Source: Lepidodermella squamata
Lineage: Eukaryota > Animalia > Gastrotricha
Length of the DNA: 64,000 bases
Reading direction: 5' to 3'
Assembly (NCBI GenBank): GCA_047495785.1
Contig: JBLDXI010000029.1
Location: 1,550,001 to 1,614,000 of the forward strand
Position 1 is the first letter of the stretch, and the number at the start of each line of letters is the position of its first letter. Positions 35,401-64,000 of this stretch are shown piece after piece. The position numbers and the translations under genes are program-made. Below the pieces are notes generated by a model. It made no database searches, was not told the DNA's origin, and worked only from the letters and a program-made list of their open reading frames with translations.

Positions 35401-35666
35401 ATTAGTGACAAAGCGCCGGTTATGGGCGGTCATGGACGACCAAGCGCCAGCAAGGGAAATGGCGAAATCGAAGACAAGATGGACCCGGCACAACTATGAA
35501 CATTTCTTGATCCATAGTGCGAACCATAGACCATAGAGCGAAGTAGAACCGCGGAACAAAAATCGGCATAAGGGTCCCACCTTTGGTCTTTGTCTGAGCT
35601 CACCTTGCGGACCGATGGAACTGGCAGGGATAATCCCTACCATCCCTAGCGTTACTTCGCTCTATG
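32470..35666. mobile_element. Non-autonomous TIR DNA transposon (P- or hAT-type) carrying host-like cargo, nested in pol
   Basis: 14-bp TIRs catagagcgaagta / tacttcgctctatg. Perfect 8-bp TSD cgtggacc (32462-32469 and 35667-35674). No transposase recognisable. A second copy of the left end starts at 35532. Confidence 0.93.
33334..34854 (-). CDS. Five-exon gene for a putative secreted protein with six Cys-rich repeats of about 55 aa (exon 1 appears frameshifted)
   Basis: Exons 34854-34808, 34752-34376, 34194-34002, 33945-33572 and 33519-33334 with GT-AG introns. Exons 2-5 splice in frame. Repeats end YEYKCC, FNYACC, FEYTCA, YAYTCC, YYYTCC, YEYTCA. Exon 1 (MAFRLAVIAATL...) hits TAG at 34810-34812. 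Confidence 0.8.
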
Positions 35667-38600
35667 CGTGGACCACATACGCGTTCAACAATCGCCGCTG
35701 CCCATTTGGGATCGCTATTAGATAAACGACCACCCAGAACACGAGCGTAGACTTCGTCACCAACCGAAAACTTGGTCGCAATAACGTCGGTTTCCGTTCG
35801 AGCAGTTTGTCGCTTTTGATCGCTTAGAATCGGATTCAAAACCAGAGTGTCGATCTTAGCGCGAATTTGACGACCGTTCAACAATTCACTAGGCGAATAA
35901 CCATTAGCCAACGGGGTACGTCGGTAAATCATCAGAAATTCGTTTAGCGCAGCAGTTTTCGACAGCGTAGACTTTTTCATGGAAGCTTTGAAGGTTTCCA
36001 CAAAACGCTCCGCCAAGCCATTGGTTTCAGGTTTGTAAGGGGCACCGGTTAAATGAATTATACCTCGATCTTGGCAACCTCGCTGAAACTCATCAGAAAG
36101 AAACATTGGAAAATTATCGGAAACAAGAACTTGCGGATAACCGAAATGAGCAAAATCTTGGTCTAACAATTCCAAGGTCGTTTTAGCCGTCAACGATTTC
36201 GTTGGATGAATGCAAGGGTAGCGAGAAGTAGAATCAACCAGAATTAACCAGTTTGAATCCAGAAAATTTATCGCATGATCAACATGAACTCGAGTCCAGG
36301 GCTTCTCAGGAATTGACCAAGGGTGAACGGGTGCTTTGATCGGATTGTTTTGATGTTCATTGCAGTTGGAGCAAGTTTTAGCCAGGTTAGTTATCGCATC
36401 ATCAATACCCGGCCAGTAGACAGCCGTTCGAGCCAGTTGCTTCATGCGTTGGATTCCAAAGTGACTCAGATGAATAACTTTGAGCACTTCGTCGCGTAAC
36501 TTTTTAGGAACCAACAACCTGTTGCCATAAAATACACACGGACCGTTAACGGACAAATAAGAGGACAGTTTTTTGAGGTCTCGGAGTTCTTGTTCTTCGA
36601 TTTTATCTGGCCACCCATTTCGAATGAACATCGCTGCTTTTGATACCACTGTATCGCGAACAGATTCTCGAATCACAGAGTTTGACTCAGCAGTAGATTG
36701 ATAGCCAATTGTTTTGATTGTCAGGACCATATCAACATCTTCACCACTTTCCTCCCCATCAAACTTCGGATCTTCACCGACTGGCAAGCGACTGAGTGCA
36801 TCGGCATTACCATGATCTTCTGTTCGACGGAACTCGATTTCGTAATCGTATTGTTGCAGCATCCAACACCATCTAGCCAGTCGATTTGCAGCCATTTGCG
36901 GCACGCCTTTCTTCGGATGAAAAAGTGACAACAGCGGTTTATGATCAGTGACCACTGAAAAATGTCGACCAAATACAAAATTATGAAACTTTTTCAACCC
37001 AAAAATTATTGCCAAAGCTTCCTTTTCGATTTGACTGTAATTGCGTTGGGCTGATGTCAATGTTTTCGAAGAATTCGCAATTGGACGATCGGAACCATCC
37101 GGAAATCGGTGAAACAAAACTGCACCAATACCAACCTGAGACGCATCGACTGCTATACCCACTGGCTTTTTCGGGTCAAAGTGAACCAAAACTTCGTCTG
37201 ACGCCAATAGACGCTTCACCTCGTCGAACGCAGTTTGCTGCTTATCGCCCCAATGCCATTGTTCACCTTGTTTGGTCAATTTATACAAAGGTTCTAGCAC
37301 AGTGGATAAGTTCGGGGGCAAAAATTTCGCGTAAAACTGAACTTGACCCAGAAAAGAACGTAAAGTTGGGACATCAACAGGTGGAGCCATTTTTAAAACA
37401 GCTTCAACTTTCAAACCTTTACCCAGACCTTCAGCCGACAGAAGATGTCCTAAGCAGGGCATAACCGGAACCGCAAAATCGAATTTTTCCAAGCGGCCAC
37501 GGAGACCTACTTCCGTCAATCGTTTGAGCGCTCCACGATAATTCGACAAATGATCTGCAGCATCTTTGCCAGTGACAATCACATTATCGAGAAAACAGGC
37601 AACGCCCGGAAGGTCGGACGTAATAGTTTCCATGATTCGCTGAAAATACCCGGGAGCTGACTTGATTCCGAAGGGTAAACGTTTCTGAAGTAGCGGACCT
37701 TGATGTGTGCTGAGAGCAAGTCGTCGTTGCGAAATCGGACCCAGTTTGATTTGGTTGTACGCGTCAGCCAGATCGATTTGACTGTACATGTAACCACCTT
37801 GAAGTTTCCGCATAATATCTTCCGGTAATGGTAACGGATGACGGTGAGGTTCGATTTGATCGTTCAATGACGCTGAATAATCGCCACAAACTCGCAGCTT
37901 TCGGGTAGTTTGACCTGGTAACAACGGTTTGATGATGGGTACGACCGGAGTGCCACATTCATTGAACGAAGTTCTTTCCCAGACACCGCGTTTAATACCA
38001 GCTTCGTAAGCGTTATTCAGGTCCTCAGTCAGAGCCAATGGTACTGGTCTTGGGCGACAAAACAAAGGTGTAAAATTGTCAACAAATTTCACTTCGAGTT
38101 CAAAATTTTTCAATTCACCCAGTTCCGGACTGAAGAATTCAGGGAATTCATCGCAAACTTTCCTAACCTGCTCCTGCAATTCAACATCGGGTTTGAGATG
38201 CTCAAAGACCTTATTAACCGGGACTGGAACTATGCCCAGTTTTTGATCGACAGAAATGCGAAGAGGTTTCATACCGTCAATACCAACCAGGTTCAACTTG
38301 GGAACGGGCGTAACGTAGAAATCCAGAGTACACGGACCGATAGATGCCGTAGATACTGGCAATTGAGTTACCCCTAGAACATTCAATTGATGTTTTGAAG
38401 CACTTTCGAATTTGTAGTTTGCTGGCGACATCTTCGGTGAGCCCAAAATCGTCCAATAATCCTCTGAGATGAAATTGACGGGTGAACCGCAGTCAACCTC
38501 AAAGGTGAATATTTGATCGCCGATTCGAAGATCTTCGTAAACAACATCTTTTGATTCAGCAACTTTGTTGAGTGCGATTGACTTGTTTTGACGAAGCGTT

Positions 38601-39583
38601 ATGACTTTAACTGGTTTCGCATCGGAATTGGTCGATCGACAAGCTGCAGCTATATGTCCATGCTTGCCACATGAGTTACAATCGTAGTCACGGTAGTGGC
38701 AGTTTTTCCGTGGATGACCCGACTTGCCACAAGATTGACAAGACAATTGATTGGGCTGGTTAGTCGGTGGCTGCGACGACTGTTGGTTCGACTTGTGAAA
38801 ATTCTTTCGTTGAAATTTCGTATTATTGCCGAACTTCTTCGGTTTTGTCGATATTTGATAGACGGGTTGCGGCGGTGGTGCGACTGTTTCTTTTGCTACT
38901 TTGGCAGCTTCCTCAGTTTCGATAGCCACCTCGATTACTTTGGAGAAGGTAAGTTCGTCGTCTTTGATTTTGAAGATGGCACGAAGTACATTTTCGTTTT
39001 TAATTGAGCCGATAAATCGAGACTTCAACGCTTCGTCGAGGGGATCTTTTATGGATTTAAAATCACAGGTAGCAGCGTCGGCTCTGATTCGACTGACTAA
39101 CTGCTGGATTGACTCCTTCGTTTTCCGACCCATGTTGCTCCAGAACTTGTGACGTTCACGCACTACGAACTTTTTCGGATCGTATTAAGTGGCCATGAAC
39201 GTGCAGATCTCTTCGTATTTGAGAGCGTTTAGTTCTTTGTCATGTTCTTGCTTGGCGTGAAGTTGTAGCTCTTTGTACAAGACGTCCGTTTGACAAGCCA
39301 AGAAGTAAGCGGCCTTGGTGTTGGTTTTACCGTGGGCACGTGCGTATGTATCAAACCGTCCTTTGTAGTCTTCCCACAGTTCGGCCTGTGGGTTGAAACC
39401 TGGGAACTCACGAGTCGCCTTTGATTCATTGTCGGCAATTAGTTTTTGAATTGCTTCGCTGTGTTCCTTGAGCGCCGTTTGACTCGAGACACTTAACGAG
39501 ACTAGTTGTTGCAGTAATTGAGCCAATGTAGGTTCGCCTGCGGTGATAGCCGGTGTCGCAGCTGTTGATGCTGGATCAGACAT
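35667..39583 (-). pseudogene. gag-pol: gag-pol polyprotein, main part; in-frame TAA at 39185-39187 and RT motif FLDN
   Basis: ORFs 39185-39583 and 35600-39163 are in one frame, separated by a single TAA. Two CCHC knuckles, VDCGS protease, RLPFGIKSAPGYFQ, NYSQIEKEALA, TDHKPL, GHPGI-like SHFGI zinc finger, VSDN and SNG-like TNGLAERFV integrase motifs. Confidence 0.93.
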
Positions 39584-43752: not shown

Positions 43753-45014
43753 TTAGGCAGTCTTGACGGTGACGGGGCGGACGTTGTTGACGAGCTCGGT
43801 GTGGTAGGCGGGCAGGCGGGCGTTGAAGGCACCGGTCATCGGCAGGCCGTAGAAGGGCATGTGCGACATGGCCGGGCACTGGTTGATGATCTCCTCGGTG
43901 GTCATCTTCGGCAGCTGGCACTCGACGACCAGGTAGCCCTCGGCGGTCTGGTACGACTTGAGCTCAACCTTGGTCAGGTCGATCTTGGCAAGAGTCTGTA
44001 AAAGAAAACGAAAATGTTATAGCTCGAATAAAAGCGTTCATCGAAACTACGTACCTCGGGGAGGACGAACTTGCGCGAGTACTTGCGGCTGATCTGGTGC
44101 TCCTTGCCGTCCTTGATCTCGTGGGCGGCCTCAATGACGACAGCACGCTCGGCCTTGTTCAGAGTGACGGTGATCTCCTCCGGCTTGTAGCTCTTCAGGG
44201 CGAAGACGAGGCACAGCTGGCGGTTGCCCTCGGTGTCGATGACGCGGATCGGGTTCGACAGGGTGTACAGCTCGACCTCGGAAGACGGGCGGAAGGCGAT
44301 GTTGTACAGCTTGTCGTGGTGGACGGGAGCGTTGAACCAGGTGTTGGCACCGAAGGTCTCGGGGCGACCCCAGGTCATCCACGAGGCCGGGTTGACGCCG
44401 GTCCACTGGCGGGCGAAGATCTGAGCGGTGATGCGCTGGCAGATGTCGGCGAACAGCTCCTGGCCGATGCGGGCGGCCTGCTCGGTCTCGACCGGGCCGC
44501 AGGAGAGGCGCTGGGCGACGGTGGCGCCGAGGCGGGCACCCTGTTCGGCAGCGCGGATGACGCAGCGGCGGCTGGTGATCTCAGCGTCGACCGGGGCGAG
44601 GGCGAGCTCGACGGCGATCTGGGCGCAGATCTCAGCACCCCATTGGGCGGCGATCGGCTGGACCAACTGCGGCTGGGCGATCGGGACCATGCGGGCGGCG
44701 ATGATCTGGGCCAGCTGGATGCCAGTCTCGGCTCCGTAGGCGCGGGCAATCTCGACCGGGCGCTCGATCGGGCTCGAGTACGGGGTCGGGACGCGGGCGA
44801 ACGGGGTCGGCATAACCGGGGCGTTGATCATCGACGGAGTCGGGGCGACGATCGGCTGCGAGAAGGGGTTGTTGATGAGGCTGCGCTCGTTGCTCAGGGT
44901 CGAGTAGATGTCGACCTTGTTGCGGAGCAGGCTCTCGACGTTGACCGGGCTGGCGTAGCCGGCGACCGGGGCGACGGTCGGGTAGGTCGGTTGGAAGGTG
45001 TAGGTGGCGGCCAT
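43753..45014 (-). CDS. Small heat-shock protein (alpha-crystallin/HSP20 domain) with a long N-terminal extension, 2 exons
   Basis: ATG 45014, intron 44054-43996, TAA 43753-43755. LKSYKPEEITV...VIEAAHE...ISRKYSRKFVLPE...LKSYQTAEGYLVVE matches the alpha-crystallin domain pattern. C-terminal VTV (IXI/V-like) motif. Confidence 0.9.
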
Positions 45015-45499
45015 TTTAGTCGGAAGATTGAAAACACACGAAAGCGAAAGAAAAGAAAGCGAATAAGCTTGAAATGAAAATTTCAAATGAGCTAGTGATG
45101 AATGAATCGTAGCAAATCGTGCGTCTTAAATACGCTATTAGCTAAGATAGCGCGTGCTTCCAGCTGGACGGAACAATAGGCGCAGCAGCGCCGCAGCCAA
45201 GAAAACGTGTGCTTGTCCGCGTGAGTGTAGACGTGATTTTTCAATCTTTAATGTTAACGCAATTCTCAGAATTTTTTCATTCATTTTTTCATTATATTTA
45301 TTTCTGCCAGTCTCACACAGACAATTTGAATTTTACACTGAGCAATGGAATCAGATATTTTAAACCGTTCAGCCCTTATTCAACATATGCTCGATTTGTT
45401 CAAAAGCCAAGAAGCACGTTAATGAATAAAAGGATATTAAAACTCAAATGTGCTGGAACCTCCCTATCCTCGATTGTGGGCGTGACGGTACTATTGCCC

Positions 45500-47790: not shown

Positions 47791-48187
47791 CTGCGAATTG
47801 CAGAAGCCAAGCTGTAATTGAATATGAGACGTATAGAAAGGGCCCTTGTTAAAACTGAATAAGAATTTGACAGAAGGGAATTGCGATAGTAAATTTATTA
47901 GAGCGTAGTCACTCCAGGACCAGAGCGTAGGGATGAAAAATGTGCGTTTGTAACAATAATAATGGGCTACTGTAATGGCATGAATTATAATCGCAGTTGT
48001 AAACATGATATTGTCTGTCATTCTTGGCTGAAGCTGCATCACGTACAGCCATGTCTCTTGTGCATTTGATTGATTAATTAGCCTCCTCGCATCTCGCATG
48101 ATTATCACGATTCTATAGTATAGCTGCCAGACTATCATTATGTCTGGCATTCAGTTAGCTGTGAACTGTAACCCCATCCGTAATAAA

Positions 48188-50581
48188 ATGCTGAAGTTTT
48201 TATTACTCATAATCTTAAAATTCTCCATCCCGGGCGCAGAGTCTAGAAAACTATATAAGATGAAAATGTTGGCTCTCATGCCATACACTGAAGCAAGGCC
48301 TTATACTTATCAGCCATGCGAGGCTGCCGGACAGATGGTACTGGACATAGTCAACAATCGAAGTGATATTTTACCCGATTACCATCTGGAATTTGAATAC
48401 GTCGATGAAGGTCCAGCTTCGATGGAAATCGCCGCTAGAGCTATTAGATTTCTTGACATCTCAATAAACTCAAAGGATTTCCTCATATCTCCGCTAACAT
48501 TAGGAGGAACGTTCACACCTGGGTGTAAAGCTTGGGCATCCATGGCTCATGAAGTGAATATGGTAATGCTGTCTTTTGGCTGCGCCGGCATTGAACAAAC
48601 AGCAAAAAGGAAGCCATATCCTAACATGTATCGAACCAGAACTAGCCAAGATCTATCTATCTATGTAAGGTATCAATTCTTGTTGAGAGCAACAAATTGG
48701 CGGAGGATTGGCATTTTAGTTTTTGTCGACGTTAATCCTATTGGCCTTCAAAGTGGAACTATGTTACACGAGATTCTCAGCAAGAATGGGTTTGAAATAG
48801 CAAAATTTGACGTCAGTGCTGATTTTAACAGCGAATTTATTGAAAACGTTAAAAAATCAGACATACGTATTTTCGCATTCGAAACCGGTGATTTTTTCTA
48901 CCTAATTCGTTTCCTTTGCCTAACATATAAAGCTGGTTTAACCGGTTCGAAGTACAGATTCATCACCTTGCTTTCTTACTACGTTGATCCAAAGCTCTAC
49001 CCAGATGCAGCTTTCCCAGAGGGTTGTTCAAGGCAAGATTATATGGAGCAGATTAAGTTGGTCATTTTCATTGGAGGAACATTGACATCAACGGTATCAG
49101 GTCAATGGAAAGATCAAATCGGAATGGCATTGCCTGATTTTGAGACAAAGTTTGCCACGTTAACTAATTACAGTAAAACCCCCGCTTTCACGTTCCGCCA
49201 CGCCTGCTATGACATGGTACTGCAAGGGGTCATGATTCTTCATGAGGCTGAGAAGTTACTGGCGAGGCAAAATTTAAGTTTGAAACATTACCATGACGAC
49301 CCTTATCGAATCATGCTTGCGACAAACGAAAGTGCCAGGAACATCAACTTTCGCTCTCTTCGTATTGGCCAGTTTCGATATTCTCCAAGGCTTGAGGTTG
49401 ATTATGAGCCTCAGTTCGTTGCAACTTGGTCTCCTGATACTGGCATTGAAATGCGCTACATGTTCACCGCTAAGCAAAAGGAGGTTCTAAATTTTACTGA
49501 TGCTGACTCCTTCACTCTGCAAGAAATGCTACCTTTTGACCCGAAAATGTTGCCCAAAGATCGAGCTTATGAAGTGACGATGCAAGGCGGCGTTCCACTT
49601 TCTGCGTTTTCAGTGATAACTACAGCGTCATTGGTCGCTTTTTTCTCCCAAAGTACCTTCATGTGGCTTAAATATGTGAAGGCACAGGAACCAAAAGGGT
49701 TGCGTGATTTCATATTTTTCATGTCATTTTGCTTCTTGACAATCGCTTCTGTCACTGAAATAACCGTTTCAAGCTCGAAAAGCAAGCGCATTTGTGAGAC
49801 TGCCTTATTTTCTACAATTCTGGGCGTTACTCTGCTCTACGGCGAGGTGGTATTTCGATTACATGCTTCCTATAGTTATATCAAGCGAAACGTGATTTGG
49901 ATCTCAAAAACAGGCCAGCCAACGAAATTCCCCCAAGTTGCCCTGAATGAAACGAAAGTTTTCCTTGCTTCTGTTATTTTTACTGGATTGAATATTGCAT
50001 TATTGATAGCATGGGTTTTATCAGACCCAGTGCGAGCTGTAGCTACAGATCCGAGGACATTTCGCTCATACCACGAGGAAATCGATACCTACATTAGCCA
50101 ATATTATGTTTACTGCACGTCGAAATATGCGGAAAATTGGCTTGCGCCTCTCATCATCATTAATTCCATCCTCCTTCTTTACGGCGTATTTCTTGTCATT
50201 AAAATGCGAGGCGATGCGCTGATTATCTTCTACCCGGAAGTCAGGCGATTGATGATTATTATCGTTGTTTCAGTCACGCTCTTCATAGCAGTTGTCGCGC
50301 TGGCGTACATCGCAACGTCTGCTTTGATGAGGGAGTTGGTAATCTCACTTGGGCTAATTATTCAGTCAGTGATAACTTGGAGTTTGATATACGTTAAAAC
50401 ACCGAATTACAACGAGCCACTTGTTATTCCGCAGTTTGCGGCTTCGCGGTTATCTGACTCGAGGATTTCAACAGCGTTAGCGCTAGAAAGGCGCAAGAGT
50501 GCTGCTTTCGTCCGCAATAATCGAAGTTCAAGCATTTATCGTGCGCCGATTGCACCCAGCAGAAGTTCTTTGGCGTTCTAG
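48188..50581 (+). CDS. GABA-B-like class C GPCR, group D (intronless, intact)
   Basis: ORF 48140-50581, likely start MLKFLLLIIL at 48188. LDIVNNRSDILPDYHLEF, YPNMYRT, WRRIGIL, WVLSDP, seven TM segments. Confidence 0.9.
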   Translation: MLKFLLLIILKFSIPGAESRKLYKMKMLALMPYTEARPYTYQPCEAAGQMVLDIVNNRSDILPDYHLEFEYVDEGPASMEIAARAIRFLDISINSKDFLISPLTLGGTFTPGCKAWASMAHEVNMVMLSFGCAGIEQTAKRKPYPNMYRTRTSQDLSIYVRYQFLLRATNWRRIGILVFVDVNPIGLQSGTMLHEILSKNGFEIAKFDVSADFNSEFIENVKKSDIRIFAFETGDFFYLIRFLCLTYKAGLTGSKYRFITLLSYYVDPKLYPDAAFPEGCSRQDYMEQIKLVIFIGGTLTSTVSGQWKDQIGMALPDFETKFATLTNYSKTPAFTFRHACYDMVLQGVMILHEAEKLLARQNLSLKHYHDDPYRIMLATNESARNINFRSLRIGQFRYSPRLEVDYEPQFVATWSPDTGIEMRYMFTAKQKEVLNFTDADSFTLQEMLPFDPKMLPKDRAYEVTMQGGVPLSAFSVITTASLVAFFSQSTFMWLKYVKAQEPKGLRDFIFFMSFCFLTIASVTEITVSSSKSKRICETALFSTILGVTLLYGEVVFRLHASYSYIKRNVIWISKTGQPTKFPQVALNETKVFLASVIFTGLNIALLIAWVLSDPVRAVATDPRTFRSYHEEIDTYISQYYVYCTSKYAENWLAPLIIINSILLLYGVFLVIKMRGDALIIFYPEVRRLMIIIVVSVTLFIAVVALAYIATSALMRELVISLGLIIQSVITWSLIYVKTPNYNEPLVIPQFAASRLSDSRISTALALERRKSAAFVRNNRSSSIYRAPIAPSRSSLAF

Positions 50582-51166
50582 AAAACGGATTATTAACAAT
50601 TTAAGTTTTTGAGAATTTAAGCGATGGTAATTGGTAATAAACCTCATTTATCTGAGTATAAAATATACGTTCGCTATATAAGGTCACGGGGGACAAGTAA
50701 AAACCGGCTTTTTAACGCGAATGAAGAGGTAAAAACTACAGGAATTTTTACTTGTCACCTATCTTCTTGAAAAGGAAGTAAACAAGCCTGAATCCGAATT
50801 ATTCAACGTTGCTAACGATATTACGATCTGAAAGGGCGAGAAGGCTACGGGTTGAAAATAAGCTCGTAATAATTTGGAAAAATCAAACTTGAATTCTGGG
50901 TTAGAAATATTGCCATTAGACTCTGTATCATTTCCCCAGGCTGACATGGATTCTAAGAGTATTCACATCTCATCAGATGGCAGAGTGAAAATGATGTCCT
51001 ATGCGACATGAGTGCACTTACTTTAATTTTGCGAAAACCAACAAAATGAACAGTTTGAAATCACAAGGGAAAACTATTAAAGCAGCATTAAGTATTTTAT
51101 CTGATTGATAAAAATAAATGCGACGGGTATCTGTCGCGTTACTCTTGCTCATGGTATTCTCTTGAC

Positions 51167-51535
51167 ATGAAAATCCTGATTCTTCTTATTTCAGTACTTT
51201 CGATGAGGCAACACGATATAATTGAGGCTTTAACTTGCCATGATTCAGATTCTGGTGTTTGTGCGATCGAGCCTGGGTTTTGCACGGTAAATGTGTAACA
51301 CCTATTTAGGTTTATTATCAAACTTCGATACATTTAGAAAACGATTGTTGGAGTTTTCGGAATCGGCTTTGTATCGAAAGACTGCGTCACACTGTGCTAC
51401 GAGGTTCACATCAGCTTACTGCGAACAATCGATGTATATTGCTGCAAAACAAGCGATACTGCTGTTAAAAAGGTGAAATACGATTGCTTGGCTCTAATGA
51501 TCGCTGTACTGCTTTGTAACTTTTGTCTGAGATAA
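51167..51535 (+). CDS. Ly6/uPAR three-finger protein, copy 1 (2 exons; lacks the terminal LCN motif)
   Basis: Exons 51167-51286 and 51338-51535 give MKILILLISVLSMRQHDIIEA-LTCHDSDSGVCAIEPGFCT-KTIVGVFGIGFVSKDCVTLCYEVHISLLRTIDVYCCKTSD-TAVKK...LALMIAVLLCNFCLR*. 12-bp in-frame deletion relative to copy 2. Confidence 0.75.
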
Positions 51536-51933
51536 ATTTCATGCATTCAGGAAACTATTTGCTTTTGAGTACTGATGGCTTAGAACTTGGAACTCCTACG
51601 TCCTACATCTAAACAATGTGGGGTTTCAAAAGTAGAAACTTGTTCCTGACAAAATCATCCCACGTTCGCTGAAAATTTTTAAAACTGATTTCCGGAGAAA
51701 AACGTTTTCATCAGACAACCAGAAATGTTGCAGGATATTTCAAGTATTAGGTTGTCGTTTAAATTACGGAATTTGACTGATAAAAGAAGGCATGACTGAA
51801 GAGAAAAGTAGCATCTGATTTTCATATCTGAGCATATTGCTTGTTTTAAGCCATTAGATGATAAATATTTGAGTTGCCCACATCCATTAGTCGCTAATTC
51901 CTCAACAGATAGGACAGTCACACACAGAAAAAA

Positions 51934-54220
51934 ATGATTTTGCCAATCGAAGCGTTATACTTATGGGGGCTAATCTGCTGCATGACGTTTAAATTATCGA
52001 CGGCGATTAAACCATACCGCTTGAAGATACCAGCCCATTTGCCGTTAACTGGTCTTCTTACTGATTTCAAACAATCGATATCAGCACAGCAAATGGCACT
52101 CGATCTTATTAACAACCGAAGCGACATCCTCCCAGATTACAACGTCGAAATCGAAGTGCTGAATGAAGAGTACGATAGCGTCCTTTCTGTATCAAGTATG
52201 ATCGATTTCATTCGACGTTATGAGCAACGCGAAGATGTATTCTTATCTCCACTAAGTCTTGGGCTTATATTCCCACTAGGATGTAAGGCCTGGGCTGGGG
52301 TCGCTCATCATCTGAAAATGGTGACTTTGTCTGCAAGTTGCGCTACTCAATCGTTAACTGCGAATCGGCGCCGCTATCCTAATTTTTATAGGGCGCTCAA
52401 TCCATTGGAAATATATGTAATGAGCCAACTTTATTTCGTGAAAAATATCGCAAAATGGTCGAATGTTGTGCACCTTAGCTCTACGTCAACATACGCCTTG
52501 GAAACTGCCAGTCTTGTTAACCAGTTATCCCAATCACTTGGGATTAATATCCAAACTTTTGAGTTCGCCTATGAAGTGAGTGACGAGCTGATGCAATCAT
52601 TCAAAACCAAGCACTATCGCATTTTCATTGTGCAAAGCGATGATTTTGCATTCAACCTCGAAGTTTTATGTCAAACATATGCTAACGCATTGAGGGGAGA
52701 TCGATACATGTTCATTCTGAATATGCTCCTGATATTCGACCCGAATTCTTTGCCTGAGTTTCTTTTACCCAAAGGTTGTAAATCTGAACACATCAAGCTG
52801 CAACTAGAGCAATCGGTATTCATAGGACTTCCGGCTGGCTTTATACTCCCCAATGATCGCAAAGACGAATTAGGCTTCACACTTCAAGATTTCGAAACCA
52901 AGTTCAAGGCGGAATATGGTGGTAATGATAAGCTCGTGGACTACTTATATCGGCACCTACAGTACGATCTCGTCCTAGAGGGATTACTGGCTTTGGATAG
53001 ATCGGAAAAGCTGCTGAGGGCACGAAATTTGTCGCTTAGAGATTACCAGAGTACTCCGGATGAAGTAATGCAAGCTGTCAATACAAGTTTGCTCCTAACA
53101 GATTTCAAAAGTCTTCAATTCGGCAGGTATCGTTATTCCCAGCGCGGAGATGCCGCCTACATTCCTCAGCTCATCGGGAAATGGAGTCGCTCATCAGGCC
53201 TGAACATTATGACGCAAATTAAACTGAGAGATAATAAAAACTGCAACTTCAAATTGGTCTTCATTTGCTGCAGAAATGCTGCGTAAATTCGAAAAGATTC
53301 CCAACGACTCGCCAAGTCTTTATCATGAAAAAGACGGCATAAGCGATGAAACCTTTGCTTGTCTTACGATTGTTGCCACTATTCCTATTTTTCTTCAGTT
53401 AGCTTCGATTGCCTTTAAACTCAACACAGATTGGTTCAAGGCTGTACAACTATTAGCAAGCGTTTGCATACAAGCTGTTGGATCGATTTTAATTACGCTT
53501 CCGCCGTATTTAAAATCCTCCAATTCCTGCCAAGCTGCATTCTTCTTAGTAGGAGTAGGCTTGATGACCGTTTACATACACCTAACAGTTGTTGCTCACA
53601 GCCAAGTATGTGAAATAAGGCGGATAGGAAGCTTGAATGCAAGACCGATATCCAGGCCTATTAATCGGCAGCATCCTGTCTTAAGAGGTATTAAACTGGC
53701 ACTGCTATTCGCTATTTTGACGTTCCTTATGCCCATAATTTGGCTCGCAATAGATCGACCATTCTTGCGGATTAACGAAGCCTTTTCTCATTTTGAAGAA
53801 AAGGAAGACATTCTCCTGTTTAAGAAACAGATTTACTGTCACTCCAATTACTTCATAGACTTTGTCACATCAACGCTTTTGTTACATGCCGTGACTTTGA
53901 TGACAGCTATGGCCTATGTTTTCAAAGTACGAGTTTTTCTCAAGAAATTATTGACTTCAAATCGAGCAAAACGCATTGCAATCTCTATCCTTATGTGCAT
54001 AACCATTTTACCTGCGACAATAATTATTGCATTCATCGTCAACTCCATCACGGCAGTTGAAATCACTTTGTCAATCGCGATTGCAGTACAATCGACAGTC
54101 GTTTGCGGTATGCTGAGCTTCGGAGTTTCTAAGCAGGCTGCTGACCAAGTCGAGATCGCATCATCATGTTTTTCGTTAAGCCCGTCTGTTTACCCTCGTC
54201 GTCCGCATCGCCTTCGCTGA
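51934..54220 (+). CDS. GABA-B-like class C GPCR, group E copy 1; +1 frameshift in an A-run at 53236-53240
   Basis: ORFs 51934-53286 and 53276-54220 are colinear with intact E copy 3. Removing one A restores the frame. Confidence 0.85.
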
Positions 54221-54572
54221 TATCTTGCTTTTCGTCGTTTTAATCATAGCGACTGTGGTGATCCCACCATACTCTGATATTCTAATCAGCACGAGAGTCT
54301 TTGACATTGTACAATTTCGTCGAAATCGTTTTCTTTTTGTGGCTTTTGCTTCATAAGTTTTTCGTTTAAAAAAGGCATCATTTTTTCCTTACATATCATG
54401 ACAAAATAGACATGACAGTGAGAGCGTAGTACATAATTAGCCGATAACGAGGGTCAATAGAGAAATCTTTGAGTAGGATCTGGTTTGACCCGTCTACGCC
54501 TTATATTCGTACATAAAGTTTCAAAGAAAGGTTCGAAGAAATCAAAGAATTATTCTTGCATCAAAGCGGAAG

Positions 54573-55339
54573 ATGCGATTAATACTTGCTACATTAATAC
54601 TTGAAGATGCTACCTGATTGCAATACTGGTTTTCTGCCGCGCTTTTGAAAATACACCGCTTGAAACTGCCGATATACCTCCCAGTAAGCGGGTTTGCAAT
54701 TAATTTCAAACAAGCTGTCAACGTCCTACAAATGGCGATTGATATAGTCAACAACAGAAGTGACATCCTGCCAGAATACCACATCGAGATGGCCATCTTA
54801 AATGAGGGATATGAAAGCGCTCTCGCAGTTTCTCGGCTGTCAATTTTCTCCGAGATCAAGAGGCGGACAGCAAATCTTACATCGCACCTCTCACAACAGG
54901 ACTCTTATTCACACCAGGCTGCAAAGCCTGGGCTTCGGTTGTTCACAACTTCAACATAGCAATGCTAGCCGGGAGTTGCACATCCGATTCTATGACCGCA
55001 AGACGTAATCTCTACCCGAATTTCTATCGTTCTCTCGCTCCCGGCGAGCTATCAGTGATGGCAACTTTGTTTTTCATACAGAAAGTCGCAAACTGGACAA
55101 CATTCGTCATTATCTCTCCCTCGGTGAATTCTTCTTTCGGAAGTGAAGCTTACAACCCGTTTTACGTTACAGCTTCAGATATGAAAAATCCTACATCATT
55201 CAGACTTGAGACTTTCCTACCAATGACCGACATTTCGCTACCAAGCGACTCCCCAAAAGAAGTTGTAACCAAGCCTAAAAGCGCAGATATTTTCGGCAAA
55301 TCCAACTTGAACGTGTCGACTGGAAATATTCCCATTTGA
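54573..55339 (+). pseudogene. Group F receptor pseudogene with two large internal deletions
   Basis: Matches the gene at 61937 up to FGSEAYNPFYVTA, jumps near 55175 to SFRLETFLPMTDISLPSDSPKEVVTK (about 63250 in the paralogue), then jumps again near 55275. Early stop and frameshifts. Confidence 0.88.
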
Positions 55340-55563
55340 CTCCGTATCATTTCCCCAGGCACAAGTGGATCCGATATCCTGCATGAGTTTCTTATGAGAT
55401 GGCTGGGCGAAAACTGTGTCCTATGCGACACGAGTGCACTTACTTTGATTTTACGAAACCCAACAACAAGAACAGAGATCGAAATCACAAGGGAAAATCT
55501 TGCAACTAGCGTTAAGTATTTTATCTGATTGATTAAAGTAAATGCCCCTTGTATTCTCTTGAC

Positions 55564-55943
55564 ATGAAAATCTTGATTTTTCTTTTTTCAGTACTTTCGA
55601 TGAAGCAACGCGATATAACTGAAGCTTTGGCCTGCCACGATTCAGATTCTGGGGTTTGCGCAATCGAGCCCGGATTTTGCACGGTAGATGTTCGTAAACC
55701 AAATTTAGTTTTGGCGTCAAACTTCGACATCTTTAGAAAACGATTGTCGGAGTTTTCGGAATCGGCTTCGAATCGAAAGACTGCGTCACGCTGTGCTACG
55801 AAGTTCACATCAACTTGCTGCGAACAATTGATGTCTATTGCTGCAAATCAAGCGATCTGTGCAATAACACTGCTGAAAAGAAGAAATTTGATCACTTGCC
55901 TACGATGATCGCTGTTTTGATATGTAGCTATTTTATAAGATAA
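55564..55943 (+). CDS. Ly6/uPAR three-finger protein, copy 2 (2 exons, 108 aa, probably GPI-anchored)
   Basis: Exons 55564-55683 and 55737-55943 (53-nt GT-AG intron) give a signal peptide, LACH...C...FCTK...SKDC...C...VYCCKSSDLCN (8 Cys), and a hydrophobic C-terminus TMIAVLICSYFIR. Confidence 0.87.
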
Positions 55944-56253
55944 ATTAAACGTATCAAAGTAAGCATTCGTTTTTGAGCACTAATAACTTGGGATAGTCTT
56001 TTTATCAACGACATCCAACTCTTCCATCTTACCTTTAAAATATGCGGGGCTGTCTGCGCGGAAACTTGCGCATAATGAAAATTAGACAAGCACATCCATT
56101 AACCACATCCATTAATCGTAAATAACCTCGAGAATGATTATCAAGTCTGAATTTATTGATTGTTGTAAGTCTTATGCTAATGAAATTGCAGGTAGCCACT
56201 AACAGTTAGTCGCTCATTCCTCATCAGATAGGACAGTCACATCCGGATAAAAT

Positions 56254-58579
56254 ATGACCTGGCAAAGCGAAACATTTATCTTTTTGGGCCTATTCTGCGC
56301 AGCATTCAACTTTTCTGTAGCAATCAAACCATACCGCTTGAAGTTACCAGTCCATTTGCCGTTGACTAGTCTTCTAACCGACTTCAAACAAGCGATATCA
56401 GTACAACAGATGGTAGTCGATCTTGTTAACAACCGAAGCGACATTCTTCCGGATTACCACGTCGAAATCGAAGTGCTGAATGAAGAGTTTGAAAGTGTCC
56501 TTTCTGTAACATCCATATTCGATTTCATTCGACGTTATGAGCAACGCGAAGATGTATTCATATCCCCACTAACTATCGGACTTGTATTCCCGCTAGGATG
56601 TAAGGCCTGGGCTGGGATCGCTCATCATCTGAAAATGGTTACTTTGGCCGCTAGTTGCGCTACTCAGTCCTTTACTGCAAATCGGCGCCGCTATCCCAAT
56701 TTTTATCGGGCCATTACTCCAACGGAAATATATATGATGAACCAACTTTATTTCGTGAGAAATATTGCAAAATGGTCGAATGTTGTACACCTCAGTTCTG
56801 CATCAGCATACGCGTTTGAAACTGCCAGTCTAATTAATGATTTATCTCAATCACAAGGGATCGATATTCAAGCTTATGAGTTTGCCCCTAAAGTGAGCGA
56901 TGAACTGATGCAATCATTCAAATCGAAGCACTACCGCGTTTTCATCGTGCAAACTGATGATTTTGCTTTCAACCTCGACGTTTTATGCCAGTCTTATGCG
57001 AATGGATTGCGAGGAGATCGATACATGTTTATCCTAAATATGCTCCTGTTATTTGATCCGAATTCCCTGCCCGAATTCATGTTGCCCCAAGGTTGTAAAT
57101 CTGAACACATCAAGCAGCAGTTGGAGCAATCGGTATTCATTGGGCTCCCGGCTGGCTTTATACTACCAAACGATCGCAAGGACCAATTAGGCCTCACACT
57201 TGGTGAATTCGAAACCAAGTTCAAAACAGAATATGGTGGCAATGATATGCTTATAGACTATTCATATCGGCATCTACGCTACGATCTTATCCTACAGGGA
57301 TTAATGGCTTTGGATAGATCGGAAAAGCTATTGAGGGCTCAAAATATGTCGCTGAGATATTATCGGAGTAACCCCGATGAGGTAATGCGTGCCGTTAATA
57401 TCAGTTTGCTTCAAACAGATTTCAAAAGTCTTCAGTTCGGAGATTATCGCTATTCCCATCGTGGAGAGGCCGATTACATTCCTCAGCTCATCGGGAAATG
57501 GAGCCGCTCATCTGGCCTGGGAATTATGACGCGTATTAGACTGAGGGATAATGAAACGGTAACTACTAATTTGTCTTCTTTTACTGAGGAAGGGTTGATG
57601 AAATTCGAAAATATTCCTAATGACTCACCGCGGCTATATCATGAAAAGGACGGCATAAGCGGCGGACTTTTTTCCTTTCTTACGATTGTTGCCACTGTCC
57701 CTGTTTTCGTTCAGTTAACTTCGATAGCCTTCAAATTCAACACGGATGCATTCAAGGCCGTAGAACTGTTGACAATCATTTGCCTACAAGCCATTGGATC
57801 GATTTTAATCATGCTCCCACCAAACTTAAAATCCTCCGCTTCATGCCAAGCTGCATTCTTTTTATTGGGATTAGGCTTGATGGTCCTCTACACACACCTA
57901 ACAATTGCTATTCACAGCCAATTATCTGAAGTAAGGCGGATAGGAAGTCTGAATGCAAGACAAGTATTCAGGCCATTGACAAAGCAGCATCCTTTCCAAA
58001 ACCATTTGAAAATATTAATCCTATTCGCTAGTTTGGGGTTTCTAATTCCCATACTTTGGCTCTCGATTGACCGATCATTCTTGCGGATTATCGAAGCCTT
58101 TTCCCATTTTAATGAGAGGGACGATGTCCTCGTTTTCACAACAAAGATGTATTGCCATTCGAATTACTTCTTAGAATGGATCACTACAACACTTTTGCTG
58201 GATGCCGTGACTTTGATGGTAGATGGTAGCTACGGCCTATGTTATCAAACTAAGAGAAATACTCAAGAAATCCTTGACGTCTCATCGAGCAATGCGCACT
58301 GCAATCTCGATCCTTGTCTGCGTAACTATTTTCCCAGCGGCAATACTGATTGCACTTGTGGTTAATTCCACCACGGCGGTTGAAATGACTTTGGCAATTG
58401 CGATTTCGGTGCAATCATCAGCCGTTTGCAGCCTGCTCAGCTTTGGAGAGTCTAAGCAGGCAGCTGATCAGGTCGAGAAAGCAGCGGGCTTTGTGTTAAG
58501 CCCGGCTCTTTCACCACGCCGTCCGCATCGGCTAGATCCGTTTCAGCTAGATTCCTCTCCTCGCCTTCAAATACCCTAA
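56254..58579 (+). CDS. GABA-B-like class C GPCR, group E copy 2; frameshifted in TM5 by a 7-bp duplication
   Basis: ORFs 56254-58365 and 58223-58579. gatggta is repeated at 58215-58228. Confidence 0.85.
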
Positions 58580-59345
58580 ATGAGATACAACTGAGTGCGT
58601 GAGGTTATCATTAGTGTGTGCAGTGAATCAAATTACGAGTGTATGCCAATAATTTACATTTTTGAGAGCGCATTTCGAAAATTTTAATTCTTGGTCGAAG
58701 AATTTGAGACTGTGTTTCTCGACAACCATGATAGCTACGAACGCCGTTCAGATATCAATTTACTCCTTGTGCCTTGATCTTTGCAATAATTATGACATTT
58801 CACCTGATTAATGTTTCTGATAAGGTCGCTAAAGTGTTTGCATTTGTAACTCTGATAACTCATGATACGAAATTGTCGGCATGGTGGGATTTTCAGGAAG
58901 CGATAATGCGAGAAAGGATCTATATGTCGCATATAATGAGAAAAAAAATATAAAACGGCCGATTTCAAGCTTTCGAAAAAATCAAAATTTGCATGTAAAA
59001 GTGCATGCTATGCAAGGTTGTCGAAAAATTTGGCATTTAGAATTAAGAAGGGGTTTTCATTTATTTTGTGTTACATTTCACATCGTGAGTGCGCACTCTG
59101 ATCACTACGTTCTCTATGGTCTTTGGCTTCGGTCATAATTTAAAAAGCGAATTCCAAAATCCAAACCTTAGCGGAATGCGAAATTCAACTAGTAAAGTAA
59201 GACAATGAGGGTAATCAATTAATAATTATTAGCCGAAAATCGTCACGCATACGTTCGAAGTTATTGATTACTGCAGGTAACGACGTCGCAGGTGGACAAA
59301 TTTCCACAGGAGACAACTCATAAACACCGAAAGAATTATTATAAA

Positions 59346-61580
59346 ATGAAATTGCGTAAAGTAGCATTCTACTTACTGTTTGGCTCCATGTATTGGAAGT
59401 TGATGGCTGGCAAGCCGTACCGCTTGAAGCTACCAGTTTATTTGCCGTTGACTAGTTTAGACTATGAATTCAAACAATCGATGTTAGCACAGCAAATGGC
59501 AGTCGATCTTGTGAACAACCGAAGCGACATTCTTCCGGATTACAGCGTCGAAATTGAAATTTTAAATGAAGAATTTGAAAGTGCACTTTCTGTATCTTCC
59601 ATTGTCGATTTCTTGCGACGTTACGAGCAAAGCAATGAAGTGTTCATATCGCCCCTAACAATTGGGCTATTATTTCCATTGGGCTGTAAGGCCTGGGCAG
59701 GAGTCGCTCATCATCTGAAAATGGTGGCCTTAATAGGCAGTTGCGGCACTCTATCGCTAACAGCAAATCGCCGTCTTTATCCAAACTTGTACCGACCTAT
59801 CACTCCAATAGACGTATCATTAATGGCTACACTGTTTTTCGTGAAAAGCATCGCGAAATGGTCGAGTTGTGTCATACTCAGCTCTGGATCATCAGCCGCG
59901 TGGGAATCATCTAACCTGTTTCATGGATTGTCCCAGAAATTCGGCATGAACATCCAAGCTTTTGAATTCACTACTGTATTAATAAGCGAAGAGCTGATGC
60001 AATCATTTAAAGCCAAGCATTATCGGGTTTTCATCGTGCACACCGATGAGCTCAGCTTCATTGTCGATTTTCTTTGTCATTCGTATGCTAATGGATTGCA
60101 AGGGAGTCGATACATGTTCATCATAAGTATGCTTCTGTTATTCGACCCTAATAACTTCCCTGAATCCCTTCTAACACGAGGCTGTCAATCCGAGCATGTT
60201 AAAAAGCAGCTAGAACAGACAGTATTCATTGGGATTCCGGCTGGTTACATTCCTCCAAATGATCGCATAGATGAAGTTGGCCTCACACTTCAAGAATTTG
60301 AAACCAAGTTCAAAGCGAATTATGGTGGGAATATTATGGCGCTGGACTATGCATATCGTCATCTACAGTACGATCTCGTCCTACAGGGCTTAATGGCATT
60401 AGATAGATCAGAGAATCTGCTGAAGGACCGAAATTTGTCGCTAAGAGATTTCCAGGCTAATCCGGATGAAGTAATGCAAGCCGTCAACATGAGTTTGCTC
60501 CAAACAGATTTCAAAAGCCTTCAATTTGGAAGGTTTCGATATTCCAACCGCGGAGAGCCCGATTACATTCCTCAACTTGTCGGGAAATGGAGTAGGTTGA
60601 GCGGCCTGCAAATAACAACTCAAATTAGAATGAAGGAGAATGAAACTGCAACTACAAACTTGTCTTCTTATGCGGCCGATTATCTCATGGATTTCGGGAA
60701 AATTCCCAACGATTCACCTGAGCAATCGCATGACCAAGGCGGCATTAGCGATGAACTTATAGCTGCTCTTTCTATTATTGCGATTATTCCTGTAATTATT
60801 GAGGTTTTAATAGCCGTGAAACACAACGGAGATGCATTCAGCTTACGTTTATTCAATACCAGCTTTCAAGCTGTTGGCTCAATAATGATCGCCCTGCCGA
60901 TACATCGAAAAAACAATTTAACTTGCCAGGTTTCAATCTTCTTAGTAGTAGCTGGCCTGATGTCCTTCTATTTGCATCTAACGCTAGCCGCTCACGGCCA
61001 GTTACGTGAAGTGAGAAAGATTGCAGCCTTGAAATCAAAACGGATATTCAGGCCGCTAAAACGAGAACCTCTCGTTCGAAAGGAGTTAAAGGTGGTTATT
61101 CCAGTTGCTATCTTGGCCTCTATTTTGCCCGTGCTATGGCTAACAACAGATCGACAATTTTTACGGATTTATGAATCATTTTCTCACTTCAACGAGAGAG
61201 ACGATGTTCTCGTTTTCAAGAAAAATACTTACTGCCACTCGCTATTTTTCATGGAATGGATCACAGCAACGATTACGTTCAATGTGGCAATTTTGTTGGT
61301 AGCCTTGGGACTTGTTTTTAGACTGCGGGGGTTTCTCAAGCGTTCTAGGAGGTTCAATCGAGCGAAACGCACTGCTGCATCGATCCTGATTTGCATTACT
61401 CTTCTGCCGGCGACAATACTTGTTGCATTTATCGTCAATTCCAGCACAGCTATTGAAATCACCGTGTTAATCGCGATTGCAATCCAGTCATCGGCAGTTT
61501 GCAGTTTGCTAAGCTTTAGAAGATTGCCGAAACGCAAACCTGGTCACAGTGAGCAATCATCGAATTTTATGCTAAGCTGA
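59346..61580 (+). CDS. GABA-B-like class C GPCR, group E copy 3 (intronless, intact)
   Basis: ORF 59292-61580, likely start MKLRKVAFYLLFG at 59346. MAVDLVNNRSDILPDYSVEI, YPNLYR, seven TM segments. Confidence 0.9.
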   Translation: MKLRKVAFYLLFGSMYWKLMAGKPYRLKLPVYLPLTSLDYEFKQSMLAQQMAVDLVNNRSDILPDYSVEIEILNEEFESALSVSSIVDFLRRYEQSNEVFISPLTIGLLFPLGCKAWAGVAHHLKMVALIGSCGTLSLTANRRLYPNLYRPITPIDVSLMATLFFVKSIAKWSSCVILSSGSSAAWESSNLFHGLSQKFGMNIQAFEFTTVLISEELMQSFKAKHYRVFIVHTDELSFIVDFLCHSYANGLQGSRYMFIISMLLLFDPNNFPESLLTRGCQSEHVKKQLEQTVFIGIPAGYIPPNDRIDEVGLTLQEFETKFKANYGGNIMALDYAYRHLQYDLVLQGLMALDRSENLLKDRNLSLRDFQANPDEVMQAVNMSLLQTDFKSLQFGRFRYSNRGEPDYIPQLVGKWSRLSGLQITTQIRMKENETATTNLSSYAADYLMDFGKIPNDSPEQSHDQGGISDELIAALSIIAIIPVIIEVLIAVKHNGDAFSLRLFNTSFQAVGSIMIALPIHRKNNLTCQVSIFLVVAGLMSFYLHLTLAAHGQLREVRKIAALKSKRIFRPLKREPLVRKELKVVIPVAILASILPVLWLTTDRQFLRIYESFSHFNERDDVLVFKKNTYCHSLFFMEWITATITFNVAILLVALGLVFRLRGFLKRSRRFNRAKRTAASILICITLLPATILVAFIVNSSTAIEITVLIAIAIQSSAVCSLLSFRRLPKRKPGHSEQSSNFMLS

Positions 61581-61936
61581 ACTTTGACAGTTCAGGTTTA
61601 ACTTGTATTTCGAAAATAAATGTCTAGGTTTTTCCTTTCAAAGCTATGTCTTTCTTCATTATCAGGTTATTTGAGCAGCTGTGGTAAACATTCACGCCAG
61701 ACCTTCGGAAGTGTGTGAGGCAATTAGCACCGCAAATCTTAACGCGAATCTTCGTTCATTTTTTCCCGCATATCATGACAAAATAGACATGACATCGGGG
61801 ACGTAGTGCATAATTGGCCGATAACGATCTTGAATATGTTTTGGACTCATCCACTCCTTAAATTGAGTTGCTCATAAGGTGGAAGGAAAGGTTAAAGACA
61901 TTACTTAAGCAAGGACAAATTTTCGCGGAGATTGCA

Positions 61937-64000
61937 ATGTTACTAAAATTCTTAATTTTAATACTATGGTTTTCCGCCTCGCATTCGAAACCTTACCGGT
62001 TGAAACTTCCAATTCACCTACCGGTGAGCGGATTTGCAATCAATTTTAAACAAGCTGTTAACGTCCTTCAAATGGCGATTGATATCGTCAACAATAGAAG
62101 TGACCTTCTGCCAGAATACCACATCGAGATTGCGATAATAAACGAAGGATATGACAGCGCTCTAGCGGTTTCCTCGGCTGTAAATTTTCTCCGAAATCAA
62201 GAGGCTGAAAACACATCTTACATCGCCCCTCTCACAACAGGACTCTTATTCACGCCAAGCTGCAAAGCTTGGGCTGCGGCAGTCCACCATTTCAACATGG
62301 CAATGCTAGCCGGGAGCTGTACAGCCGACTCAATGACCGCAAGAAGGAATATCTACCCAAATTTCTACCGATCTCTTGCTCCTGGCGAGTTATCAGTAAC
62401 GGCAACTCTGTTTTTTATTCAGAAGATAGCAAATTGGACAAAATTCGTCATTATCTCTTCTTCGGTGAAATCTGCATTTGGAAGTGAAGCTTACAACCCG
62501 TTTTACGTAACAGCTCAGAGATTAGGTGTGAGATTAGGTTCAGGCGTTTGAAGCCAAGTCAGAAATCGATAGCGAAACTGCTGAGCTATTTCTCTCTAGA
62601 CATTACCGCATTTTTGTTTTCGAATCTGATAATTTCGAGTTCAACCTGAAATTGATCTGCCAGACCTACAAACGTGGAATTCGAGGAAAGAGATACATGT
62701 TTCTGATGAAATTTCTTACATACCCGGATACAGATTCGCTTCCGGAGTTTTTGCTTCGGAATATCGGCTGCACTGCGGAGCACATCCGCCAACAACTAGA
62801 ACAATCTGTATTTTTTGGATCGCCAGCCGGATGGATCATTCCGAACAATCGAACGGATCACTTAGGTATCACATTGGCGAACTTCGAACGAATTTTTCTC
62901 TCCAATTATGGCGGAAATCCGAGAACTCCGGATTATGCGTATCGACACTTGTATTACGATTTGATACTTCAAAGCCTCGTAACGCTCGACGGAGCTGATC
63001 GGGCTTTGAAATTGAAAAATCGCTCGCTCAGAGACTACCAAACCAATCCTGAAGAGGTACTACACGCAGTTAATGTAAGCTTGAGGCATGTCAGCTTCAA
63101 TAGTCTGAGATTTGGTAGCTTTCGATACTCTAATCGGGTAGAGGTGGACTACGAACCACAATTTATCGGGACTTGGAGCCCTAGAGCAGGTCTCCAAATC
63201 AGGTTCAGCCTTCAGCTCAGTGAAAACGCTTCGGACCTCAAAGACTCTTCTTCATTCAGACTTGAGACTTTCATACCAATGACCGACATCTCACTTCCAA
63301 GCGACTCCCCAAAAGAAGTTGTGACCAAGCTTGGCTTATCGGTCATTGACTTTACGGTCATTAGCCTTACTTCCTTGGTCCCCTTTACAATGCAACTAGC
63401 ATGCGTCACTCGGAACGCTCGTAAGGAAAGGCATGCAAATCGTGTGATGGATTTAGTTCTGCTTATAAGCTTTGGTCTGGGATCAGTTGGTTCGATATGT
63501 TTAGTGAGATCTCCTGGGGAGATAATTTCAGGAGCGTACTGCCCCGTAGCTATTTCCGGCATTACAGCATGTTTGAATCTAATGTACGGAGTTCTGACTG
63601 TGAATCTTTATAACGAGTTCAACGCTCTTGAACGAGAAAGTTCGACTCGTTCTCATAAGCGACGATCTACGCTTCGCATCAAAGCAGTGCCCCGGAAGCT
63701 ATTGAAAAAGTCATGTATCATTTTCGCGCCATATTTCTTGGCGATTATCGCTTGGGGGATCGCTGACATGCCCTACTTAACGATATTTTACGACTTGCCA
63801 TACTGTGATGAATCGAATGACTTGATCACACATCAAGTCGTTTCGTATTGCACCTCGAATTACTTCATTTACTGGCTTATTGTCATGATGCTGTTCGACC
63901 TGTTACTTTTGATATCAGCTGTATTACTGATTTTGAAGCTGAAAAGATTCAAGGCTTTGAAATCAAGTGTCCGCTCGAAACAGCTGAGTTTTGCTGTCAT
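61937..64000 (+). CDS. GABA-B-like class C GPCR, group F; frameshift near 62530; runs off the window end
   Basis: MLLKFLILIL start at 61937. After gagattaggtgtgagattaggt the homologous frame continues QAFEAKSEID...HYRIFVFESDNF...DYAYRHLYYD... towards the window end; the ORF track misses it, consistent with no stop before 64000. Confidence 0.85.

Follow-up and report, generated by a model that had tools for sequence, protein, structure and literature searches.

Three-finger genes occur in all 22 animal phyla analysed, with tens to more than 100 of them per invertebrate genome, and a few genes in molluscs, arthropods and starfish encode a three-finger domain fused to a receptor with seven transmembrane segments (7TM) (PMC13719153). 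For the Drosophila Ly6 protein Belly roll, a function as cis-ligand of the class A G protein-coupled receptor (GPCR) AstC-R2 has been reported (bioRxiv 10.64898/2026.06.29.735401). Here, we describe two small genes, predicted from sequence to be of the Ly6/uPAR type, in a stretch of 64,000 nucleotides (nt) from Lepidodermella squamata (contig JBLDXI010000029.1, positions 1,550,001-1,614,000 of the forward strand), which is referred to as the window throughout. They lie in duplicated spacers upstream of E1 and E2, two receptor genes in an array of class C GPCR-like genes. We consider it likely that the two are real spliced Ly6/uPAR-type genes that were copied passively together with receptor gene E, and passive co-duplication is the best explanation for the pairing of Ly6 and receptor genes at this locus.

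Two spliced gene models in duplicated spacers

A preliminary description of this DNA had claimed that the spacers upstream of E1 and E2 are duplicated and that each of them holds a two-exon gene absent from the list of open reading frames (ORFs). The spacers are indeed homologous (50880-51576 versus 55298-55984, 75.9% identity over 719 columns, E 1e-149 in blastn), and the duplication was also picked up as direct-repeat families D9, D10, D14, D15 and D17 in a repeat search of the window. In full extent, the duplicated spacers cover about 700 nt each (50873-51576 and 55292-55984). Both contain an ATG-started ORF that is interrupted by one GT..AG intron at the homologous place (51 and 53 nt, respectively) and ends with TAA. 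With these introns, intact ORFs and the selection on the encoded domain described below, the two unlisted genes stand as gene models, and splice-site dinucleotides and ORF fit exactly the junction 55683/55737 that had been predicted for copy 2. The predicted products comprise 105 amino acids (aa) for copy 1 and 108 aa for copy 2. The elements of the two gene models are as follows:

50873..51166, plus strand: upstream block of Ly6 copy 1, conserved at about 79% identity with 55292-55563; candidate promoter or 5' untranslated region (UTR)
51167..51286, plus strand: exon 1 of Ly6 copy 1, 40 codons, with ATG, hydrophobic N-terminus and Cys 1-3; donor GTAAAT at 51287; 87% nucleotide identity to copy 2
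51287..51337, plus strand: intron of copy 1, 51 nt, GT..AG, acceptor ..TTTAG; contains an in-frame stop
51338..51535, plus strand: exon 2 of Ly6 copy 1, with Cys 4-7, hydrophobic tail and stop; lacks the last Cys-Asn
55292..55563, plus strand: conserved upstream block of Ly6 copy 2, 79% identical to copy 1
55564..55683, plus strand: exon 1 of Ly6 copy 2, donor GTAGAT
55684..55736, plus strand: intron of copy 2, 53 nt, GT..AG, acceptor ..TTTAG
55737..55943, plus strand: exon 2 of Ly6 copy 2, with Cys 4-8, CCKSSDLCN, Asn-Asn-Thr, spacer, 11-residue hydrophobic tail and stop

Comparison of the two copies codon by codon revealed a strikingly uneven distribution of substitutions. Within the domain (codons 23-80), 14 synonymous differences face only 4 non-synonymous ones, corresponding to a ratio of non-synonymous to synonymous substitution rates (dN/dS) of 0.063, and the differences at codon positions 1, 2 and 3 number 2, 2 and 14 (binomial p 1.1e-6). 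The excess at third positions together with the low dN/dS points to a translated and constrained domain, that is, to real coding sequence under selection. The view that the Ly6 ORFs represent genuine coding genes under purifying selection in their domain is well supported by this pattern of substitution. In the leader (codons 1-22), 3 synonymous and 5 non-synonymous differences were counted (dN/dS 0.41; 3, 3 and 2 at the three codon positions), and in the tail about 6 synonymous and 18 non-synonymous ones (dN/dS 0.65 from codon 81 onwards; 9, 9 and 6 at the three positions of codons 84-108). The freer evolution of tail and signal is as expected for regions that need only be hydrophobic. More generally, where a tiny spliced gene has a local duplicate, comparing the two by codon position can validate it without recourse to RNA or homologues.

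The short introns appear normal for this genome, since a 60-nt GTAATT..CTTTAG intron would link two ORFs of an astacin/MAM gene elsewhere in the window. The case for splicing is weakened by the nature of the only public run that contains the locus, termed X1 here: its contigs are genomic DNA, in which introns and spacers are represented as well as exons. At positions 55630 and 55964, X1 departs from the window at full depth and is thus not simply the consensus from which the window was built. At 55630, X1 has A instead of G, so that residue 23 of copy 2 becomes Thr, as in copy 1, instead of Ala.

Very unlikely, in our judgement, is the possibility that the duplicated Ly6 and E segment is a decaying relic that has fallen out of use and in which the Ly6 ORFs have stayed intact only for want of time. 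Such decay would agree with the broken reading frames of E1 and E2 (see below), with the absence of the last Cys-Asn from copy 1, the exon 2 of which was not recognised by a language model, and with the fact that the only public run containing the locus is genomic DNA. However, at a synonymous divergence (dS) of about 0.48, neutral decay would leave many more non-synonymous changes than 4 out of 18, in addition to stops or frameshifts, and both ORFs, both pairs of splice sites and the upstream block are intact. At most, the data are compatible with a recent loss of function, most plausibly that of copy 1.

The degree of identity between the copies differs from segment to segment. It amounts to 79% for the 270 nt upstream, 87% for exon 1, 75% for the intron, 83% for exon 2 and 56% for the 3' flank. 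The better conservation of the upstream 270 nt compared to intron and 3' flank suggests that they may serve as promoter or 5' UTR. Some 40-70 nt before the Ly6 ATGs, an A/T-rich block of 22 nt (TTAAGTATTTTATCTGATTGAT) is identical between the copies (55500-55525 and 51076-51101) and may be a core promoter element. An insertion of 27 nt, present only in copy 1, separates this block from the ATG.

Family membership of the predicted proteins

The preliminary description had proposed a signal peptide, a three-finger domain and a tail resembling that of glycosylphosphatidylinositol (GPI)-anchored proteins, and had noted eight cysteines and the ending CCKSSDLCN for copy 2. The latter is correct for the domain, the eight cysteines of which are located at positions 24, 32, 39, 56, 60, 75, 76 and 82; one further cysteine resides in the tail. 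The order of elements in copy 2 is a hydrophobic N-terminus, a short charged stretch, Leu-Ala-Cys-His, the framework C-x7-C-x6-C-x16-C-x3-C-x14-CC-x5-CN, Asn-Thr-Ala, a polar spacer and a hydrophobic end of 11 residues. Copy 2 thus exhibits the cysteine pattern of the Ly6/uPAR family (8-10 cysteines in canonical order, CC-x(4-5)-C-N at the end). Copy 1 falls outside this pattern: its domain has seven cysteines, as 9 nt present in copy 2 have been deleted in frame, and with them Leu-Cys-Asn, which includes the eighth cysteine of the domain. Therefore, the proposed hallmarks, i.e., cysteine framework and overall build, can be recognised in copy 2, while copy 1 is devoid of the last Cys-Asn. In a six-frame translation of the 64-kb window, CC-x(4-5)-CN was found once, at Ly6 copy 2.

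For profile and structure comparisons, the full-length Pfam query was the copy 2 product, and two pieces of about 70 aa from the copies served as domain-level queries. The best Pfam family for the 108-aa protein was Toxin_TOLIP (PF00087), with copy 2 residues 30-83 aligned to positions 19-72 of the 72-position profile, thus reaching the terminal CN. UPAR_LY6 (PF00021) and QVR (PF17064) were not matched by the full copy 2 product, and a Pfam scan of single exons alone gave no match. In a language-model search, all neighbours of copy 2 exon 2 belonged to the three-finger clan (QVR, UPAR_LY6, Toxin_TOLIP, CD59 and Activin_recp; 0.84-0.91); these were rated as leads. Exon 2 of copy 1, which lacks the CN, was not recognised in this search.

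The predicted N-terminus has a hydrophobic core (residues 3-13, Kyte-Doolittle 2.8-3.0) that is followed by 8-11 charged residues before Ala-Leu-Ala-Cys. At the C-terminus, the sequence continues beyond the CN with Asn-Thr-Ala, a polar spacer of 10 residues and a hydrophobic end, which numbers 11 residues in copy 2 and 15 in copy 1 and is too short for a transmembrane helix.

Several observations weigh against assignment to the family. The Toxin_TOLIP match (E 0.0031, 18.7 bits) stays below the curated cut-off of 21.2. For a signal peptide, the residues that separate the hydrophobic core from the first cysteine are unusually numerous and charged, and the cleavage site is uncertain. AlphaFold2, run without a usable alignment, yielded a predicted local distance difference test score (pLDDT) of 43.8 for the full-length protein and of 36.7 for the domain with two rows, too low for a usable model. 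Furthermore, when 1.84 billion representatives were searched exhaustively by HMMER with the 108-aa product, no true relative was retrieved, and a word-index protein search with exon 2 gave no candidate relative.

Two HMMER matches with E values of 1e-8 to 1e-9 were rejected as they are long repetitive metagenome proteins in which weak repeats add up and no cysteines are aligned. Similarly, PDB matches obtained with exon 2, the full-length protein and the two-row profile were dismissed as chance: they comprised hundreds of redundant coronavirus main-protease entries at E 0.007-0.1 without cysteine register. A scan of JGI metagenomes with exon 2 led to 289 pattern matches, none of which was confirmed.

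On balance, cysteine pattern, architecture and the sub-threshold profile match make it probable that the predicted proteins are members of the Ly6/three-finger family. Each spacer would then encode a small cell-surface protein with a secretion signal, a domain of about 60 residues with eight cysteines and a hydrophobic C-terminus of the type exchanged for GPI. Splicing, secretion, GPI anchor, fold and function are all properties that we infer for these products.

Receptor loci and linkage

The window consists of animal DNA with about 43% G+C and contains approximately 11 intronless genes or fragments in which an ANF_receptor (Venus flytrap) domain is followed by seven hydrophobic segments. The encoded proteins are very divergent class C GPCR-like receptors. 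The best database match for E2 is fish GABA-B R1 (20% identity, E 2.5e-8). The loci surrounding the Ly6 copies are:

48140-50581, plus strand: receptor F, upstream of Ly6 copy 1
51934..54220, plus strand: receptor E1, Pfam ANF_receptor flytrap and 7TM, frame-broken
54630..55165, plus strand: 5' fragment of a G-type receptor, about 190 codons, between E1 and Ly6 copy 2, with tblastn similarity to 61985-62536
56254..58501, plus strand: receptor E2, frame-broken near the fifth transmembrane segment (TM5)
59292..61580, plus strand: receptor E3, intact ORF of 762 aa with the full set of hydrophobic segments, no Ly6 gene upstream
about 61900 to the end of the window, plus strand: receptor G, from the layout of the region

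The two spacers are parts of a repeat of about 4.3-4.4 kb that includes E1 and E2. As dS is similar for the Ly6 copies (0.48) and for E1 versus E2 (0.60), a single event copied both genes. The duplicated unit differs from the F - Ly6 - E cassette proposed in the preliminary description: it consists of Ly6 and E, and upstream of copy 2 there is no F gene but the 5' fragment of a G-type receptor, which is paired with 61759-63330 by direct repeats D5, D8, D13 and D16.

Both receptor genes adjoining a Ly6 gene are frame-broken. In a three-way nucleotide alignment with E2 and E3, E1 is set apart by one additional base within a run of A, at 53236, which leaves ORFs of 450 and 314 aa. The X1 contig is identical to the window over 53163-54073, so that the frameshift is no obvious assembly slip. 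In E2, a private tandem duplication of 7 nt, absent from E1 and E3, is located in the fifth hydrophobic segment, with GATGGTA at 58215-58221 repeated at 58222-58228. TM5-7 are missing from the E2 ORF, which stops at 58365; in another frame, similarity to the tail of E3 extends as far as 58501. The duplication has the appearance of a recent inactivating mutation or of a null allele in this haplotype.

As a side observation, the 450-aa ORF of E1 encodes a hydrophobic leader and the flytrap only, and the overlapping, ATG-started 314-aa ORF the seven hydrophobic segments. A frameshift like this is one way in which secreted flytrap-only proteins could arise.

In principle, the neighbourhood of Ly6 and receptor genes could reflect a functional module, in which the class C receptors encoded in the array work with the Ly6 protein, be it as a cis-ligand tethered to the membrane, as a chaperone or as an accessory subunit, and the upstream position on the same strand provides shared regulation. 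The Ly6 genes indeed reside on the same strand as E1 and E2, about 300-400 nt upstream, were copied with them, and purifying selection has acted on Ly6 domain and receptors alike after the duplication. For E1 versus E2, dN/dS is 0.22, indicating purifying selection over most of their divergence; this makes a past Ly6-receptor partnership conceivable and speaks against mere passive copying. Belly roll as cis-ligand of AstC-R2 (bioRxiv 10.64898/2026.06.29.735401) and the three-finger-7TM fusion genes of molluscs, arthropods and starfish (PMC13719153) likewise render a partnership between Ly6 proteins and GPCRs conceivable.

Nevertheless, we regard such a module as unlikely. A Ly6 gene accompanies only two of the roughly 11 receptor loci of the window, and one duplication of Ly6 and E accounts for both. 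Scans of the window by tblastn and blastn and with the relaxed pattern CC-x(3-7)-C brought up no further Ly6-like exon, be it near the other nine or so loci (E3, F, G and those at 3-9 kb and 40-47 kb), which include the intact E3, F and G, or elsewhere. Upstream of E3, which is more closely related to E1 and E2 than any other locus, tblastn and blastn detected no Ly6-like sequence in 58366-59291. The linkage thus represents one ancestral adjacency that was copied once. In addition, the members of the putative cassette are not jointly intact: E1 carries one extra nucleotide and E2 the 7-nt duplication, and Ly6 copy 2 is intact. The Ly6 domain is also conserved more strictly (dN/dS 0.06) than the receptors E1 and E2 (0.22), and its retention next to two frame-broken receptors argues against an obligate pair. 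Chance neighbours are to be expected with tens to more than 100 three-finger genes per genome (PMC13719153), and a literature search for Ly6 with class C GPCRs uncovered incidental co-mentions only. Neither the recurrent receptor and Ly6 cassette nor the accessory-subunit role put forward earlier finds support in this single adjacency with its broken partner receptors, and passive hitch-hiking, which the preliminary description had named as the alternative, fits best.

According to a wider proposal, three-finger proteins specific to this lineage have come to serve a fast-evolving family of intronless class C receptors as cis-ligands or chaperones tethered to the membrane, and the adjacency seen here would be one instance of a recurrent pairing that possibly includes Ly6-receptor fusions elsewhere in the genome. 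We think this improbable. If true, the partnership of Ly6 proteins with receptors, so far one with ion channels and a single class A GPCR, would also include class C receptors.

It is also extremely unlikely that the Ly6 exons are optional 5' exons of E, spliced from an alternative donor before the hydrophobic tail and giving rise to a three-finger-flytrap-7TM receptor. Ly6 and E share the strand and are a short distance apart, and LU+7TM architectures are known in other invertebrates (PMC13719153). However, both Ly6 ORFs end in a hydrophobic tail and a stop codon of their own, E1 and E2 each open with a separate ATG and hydrophobic leader, and no reading frame runs through from Ly6 to E.

We thus favour the following course of events for passive co-duplication. 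By chance, a single ancestral Ly6 gene would have been the immediate upstream neighbour of receptor gene E, and the two would have been copied together when a segment of about 4.3 kb was duplicated once. Purifying selection would then have kept the three-finger domain in both copies, while copy 1 lost the last Cys-Asn and hence presumably the fourth disulfide, and both neighbouring receptors gained frameshifts. The Ly6 proteins most likely act, as other family members do, as membrane-tethered modulators or ligands of a receptor or channel encoded elsewhere, and their place in the class C array would be due to hitch-hiking. The map of the locus gains two unlisted small genes. Three-finger proteins have been found in all animal phyla examined, frequently by the dozen (PMC13719153), so that a further pair is nothing unusual. 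Their pairing with class C receptors would matter only if it were recurrent and functional, and the evidence from the window points against this.

Other features of the window lie apart from the Ly6 genes. An astacin protease gene with three MAM domains and several exons separated by short introns is located on the plus strand (17649-19854). Its closest database relative (61% identity) resides on an ENA metagenome contig of 22.6 kb and 38.8% G+C along with MAM and trypsin genes, implying that a related animal was present in that sample; no Ly6 or receptor relative was found on this contig. On the minus strand, an uninterrupted Gypsy-type pol ORF of 1187 aa with reverse transcriptase, RNase H and integrase occupies 35600-39163; its integrity indicates a possibly young element. 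Also on the minus strand (33740-34558), a cysteine-containing module (..Y-x-Y-x-CC-x-AP-x4-C-R..) occurs twice in one frame and is unrelated to the Ly6 genes. An island at 43974-45086 is rich in G+C (52.8% versus about 43%) and has long ORFs on both strands without a Pfam match. An Rfam scan of the whole window found nothing.

Comparison with known systems

Dedicated partners of class C GPCRs exist, among them the H2-M10 MHC class Ib proteins that work with V2R vomeronasal receptors and the RAMPs that work with the calcium-sensing receptor. The former pair had served as the analogy in the preliminary description. The resemblance to the locus described here would lie in a small membrane-attached protein that is encoded near class C receptors or used with them. 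However, the protein families are unrelated, the linked receptors in the window are broken and their linkage there goes back to one adjacency. Belly roll and AstC-R2 set a precedent for a GPI-anchored Ly6 protein acting directly on a GPCR in the same membrane. That receptor belongs to class A, though, and the two genes are not described as linked.

With respect to the proteins themselves, snake three-finger toxins (Toxin_TOLIP, PF00087) share the eight-cysteine frame and the terminal CN with copy 2. The x6 and x16 spacings after the second cysteine are presumably also common to these toxins. In contrast to the secreted toxins, which lack such a feature, the protein from the window has a hydrophobic C-terminal tail, and nothing suggests a role of the Ly6 copies in venom. 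GPI-anchored single-domain Ly6/uPAR proteins such as Lynx1, CD59, Quiver/Sleepless and Belly roll differ from the predicted protein in that it has eight cysteines instead of the usual ten, lacks the extra disulfide of finger 1 and has a very short finger 1, with seven residues from the first to the second cysteine. Otherwise, the predicted protein resembles them: it has about 105 aa, a hydrophobic N-terminus and a single cysteine-rich domain that begins with Leu-x-Cys and finishes with CC-x5-CN, followed by a spacer and a short hydrophobic C-terminus.

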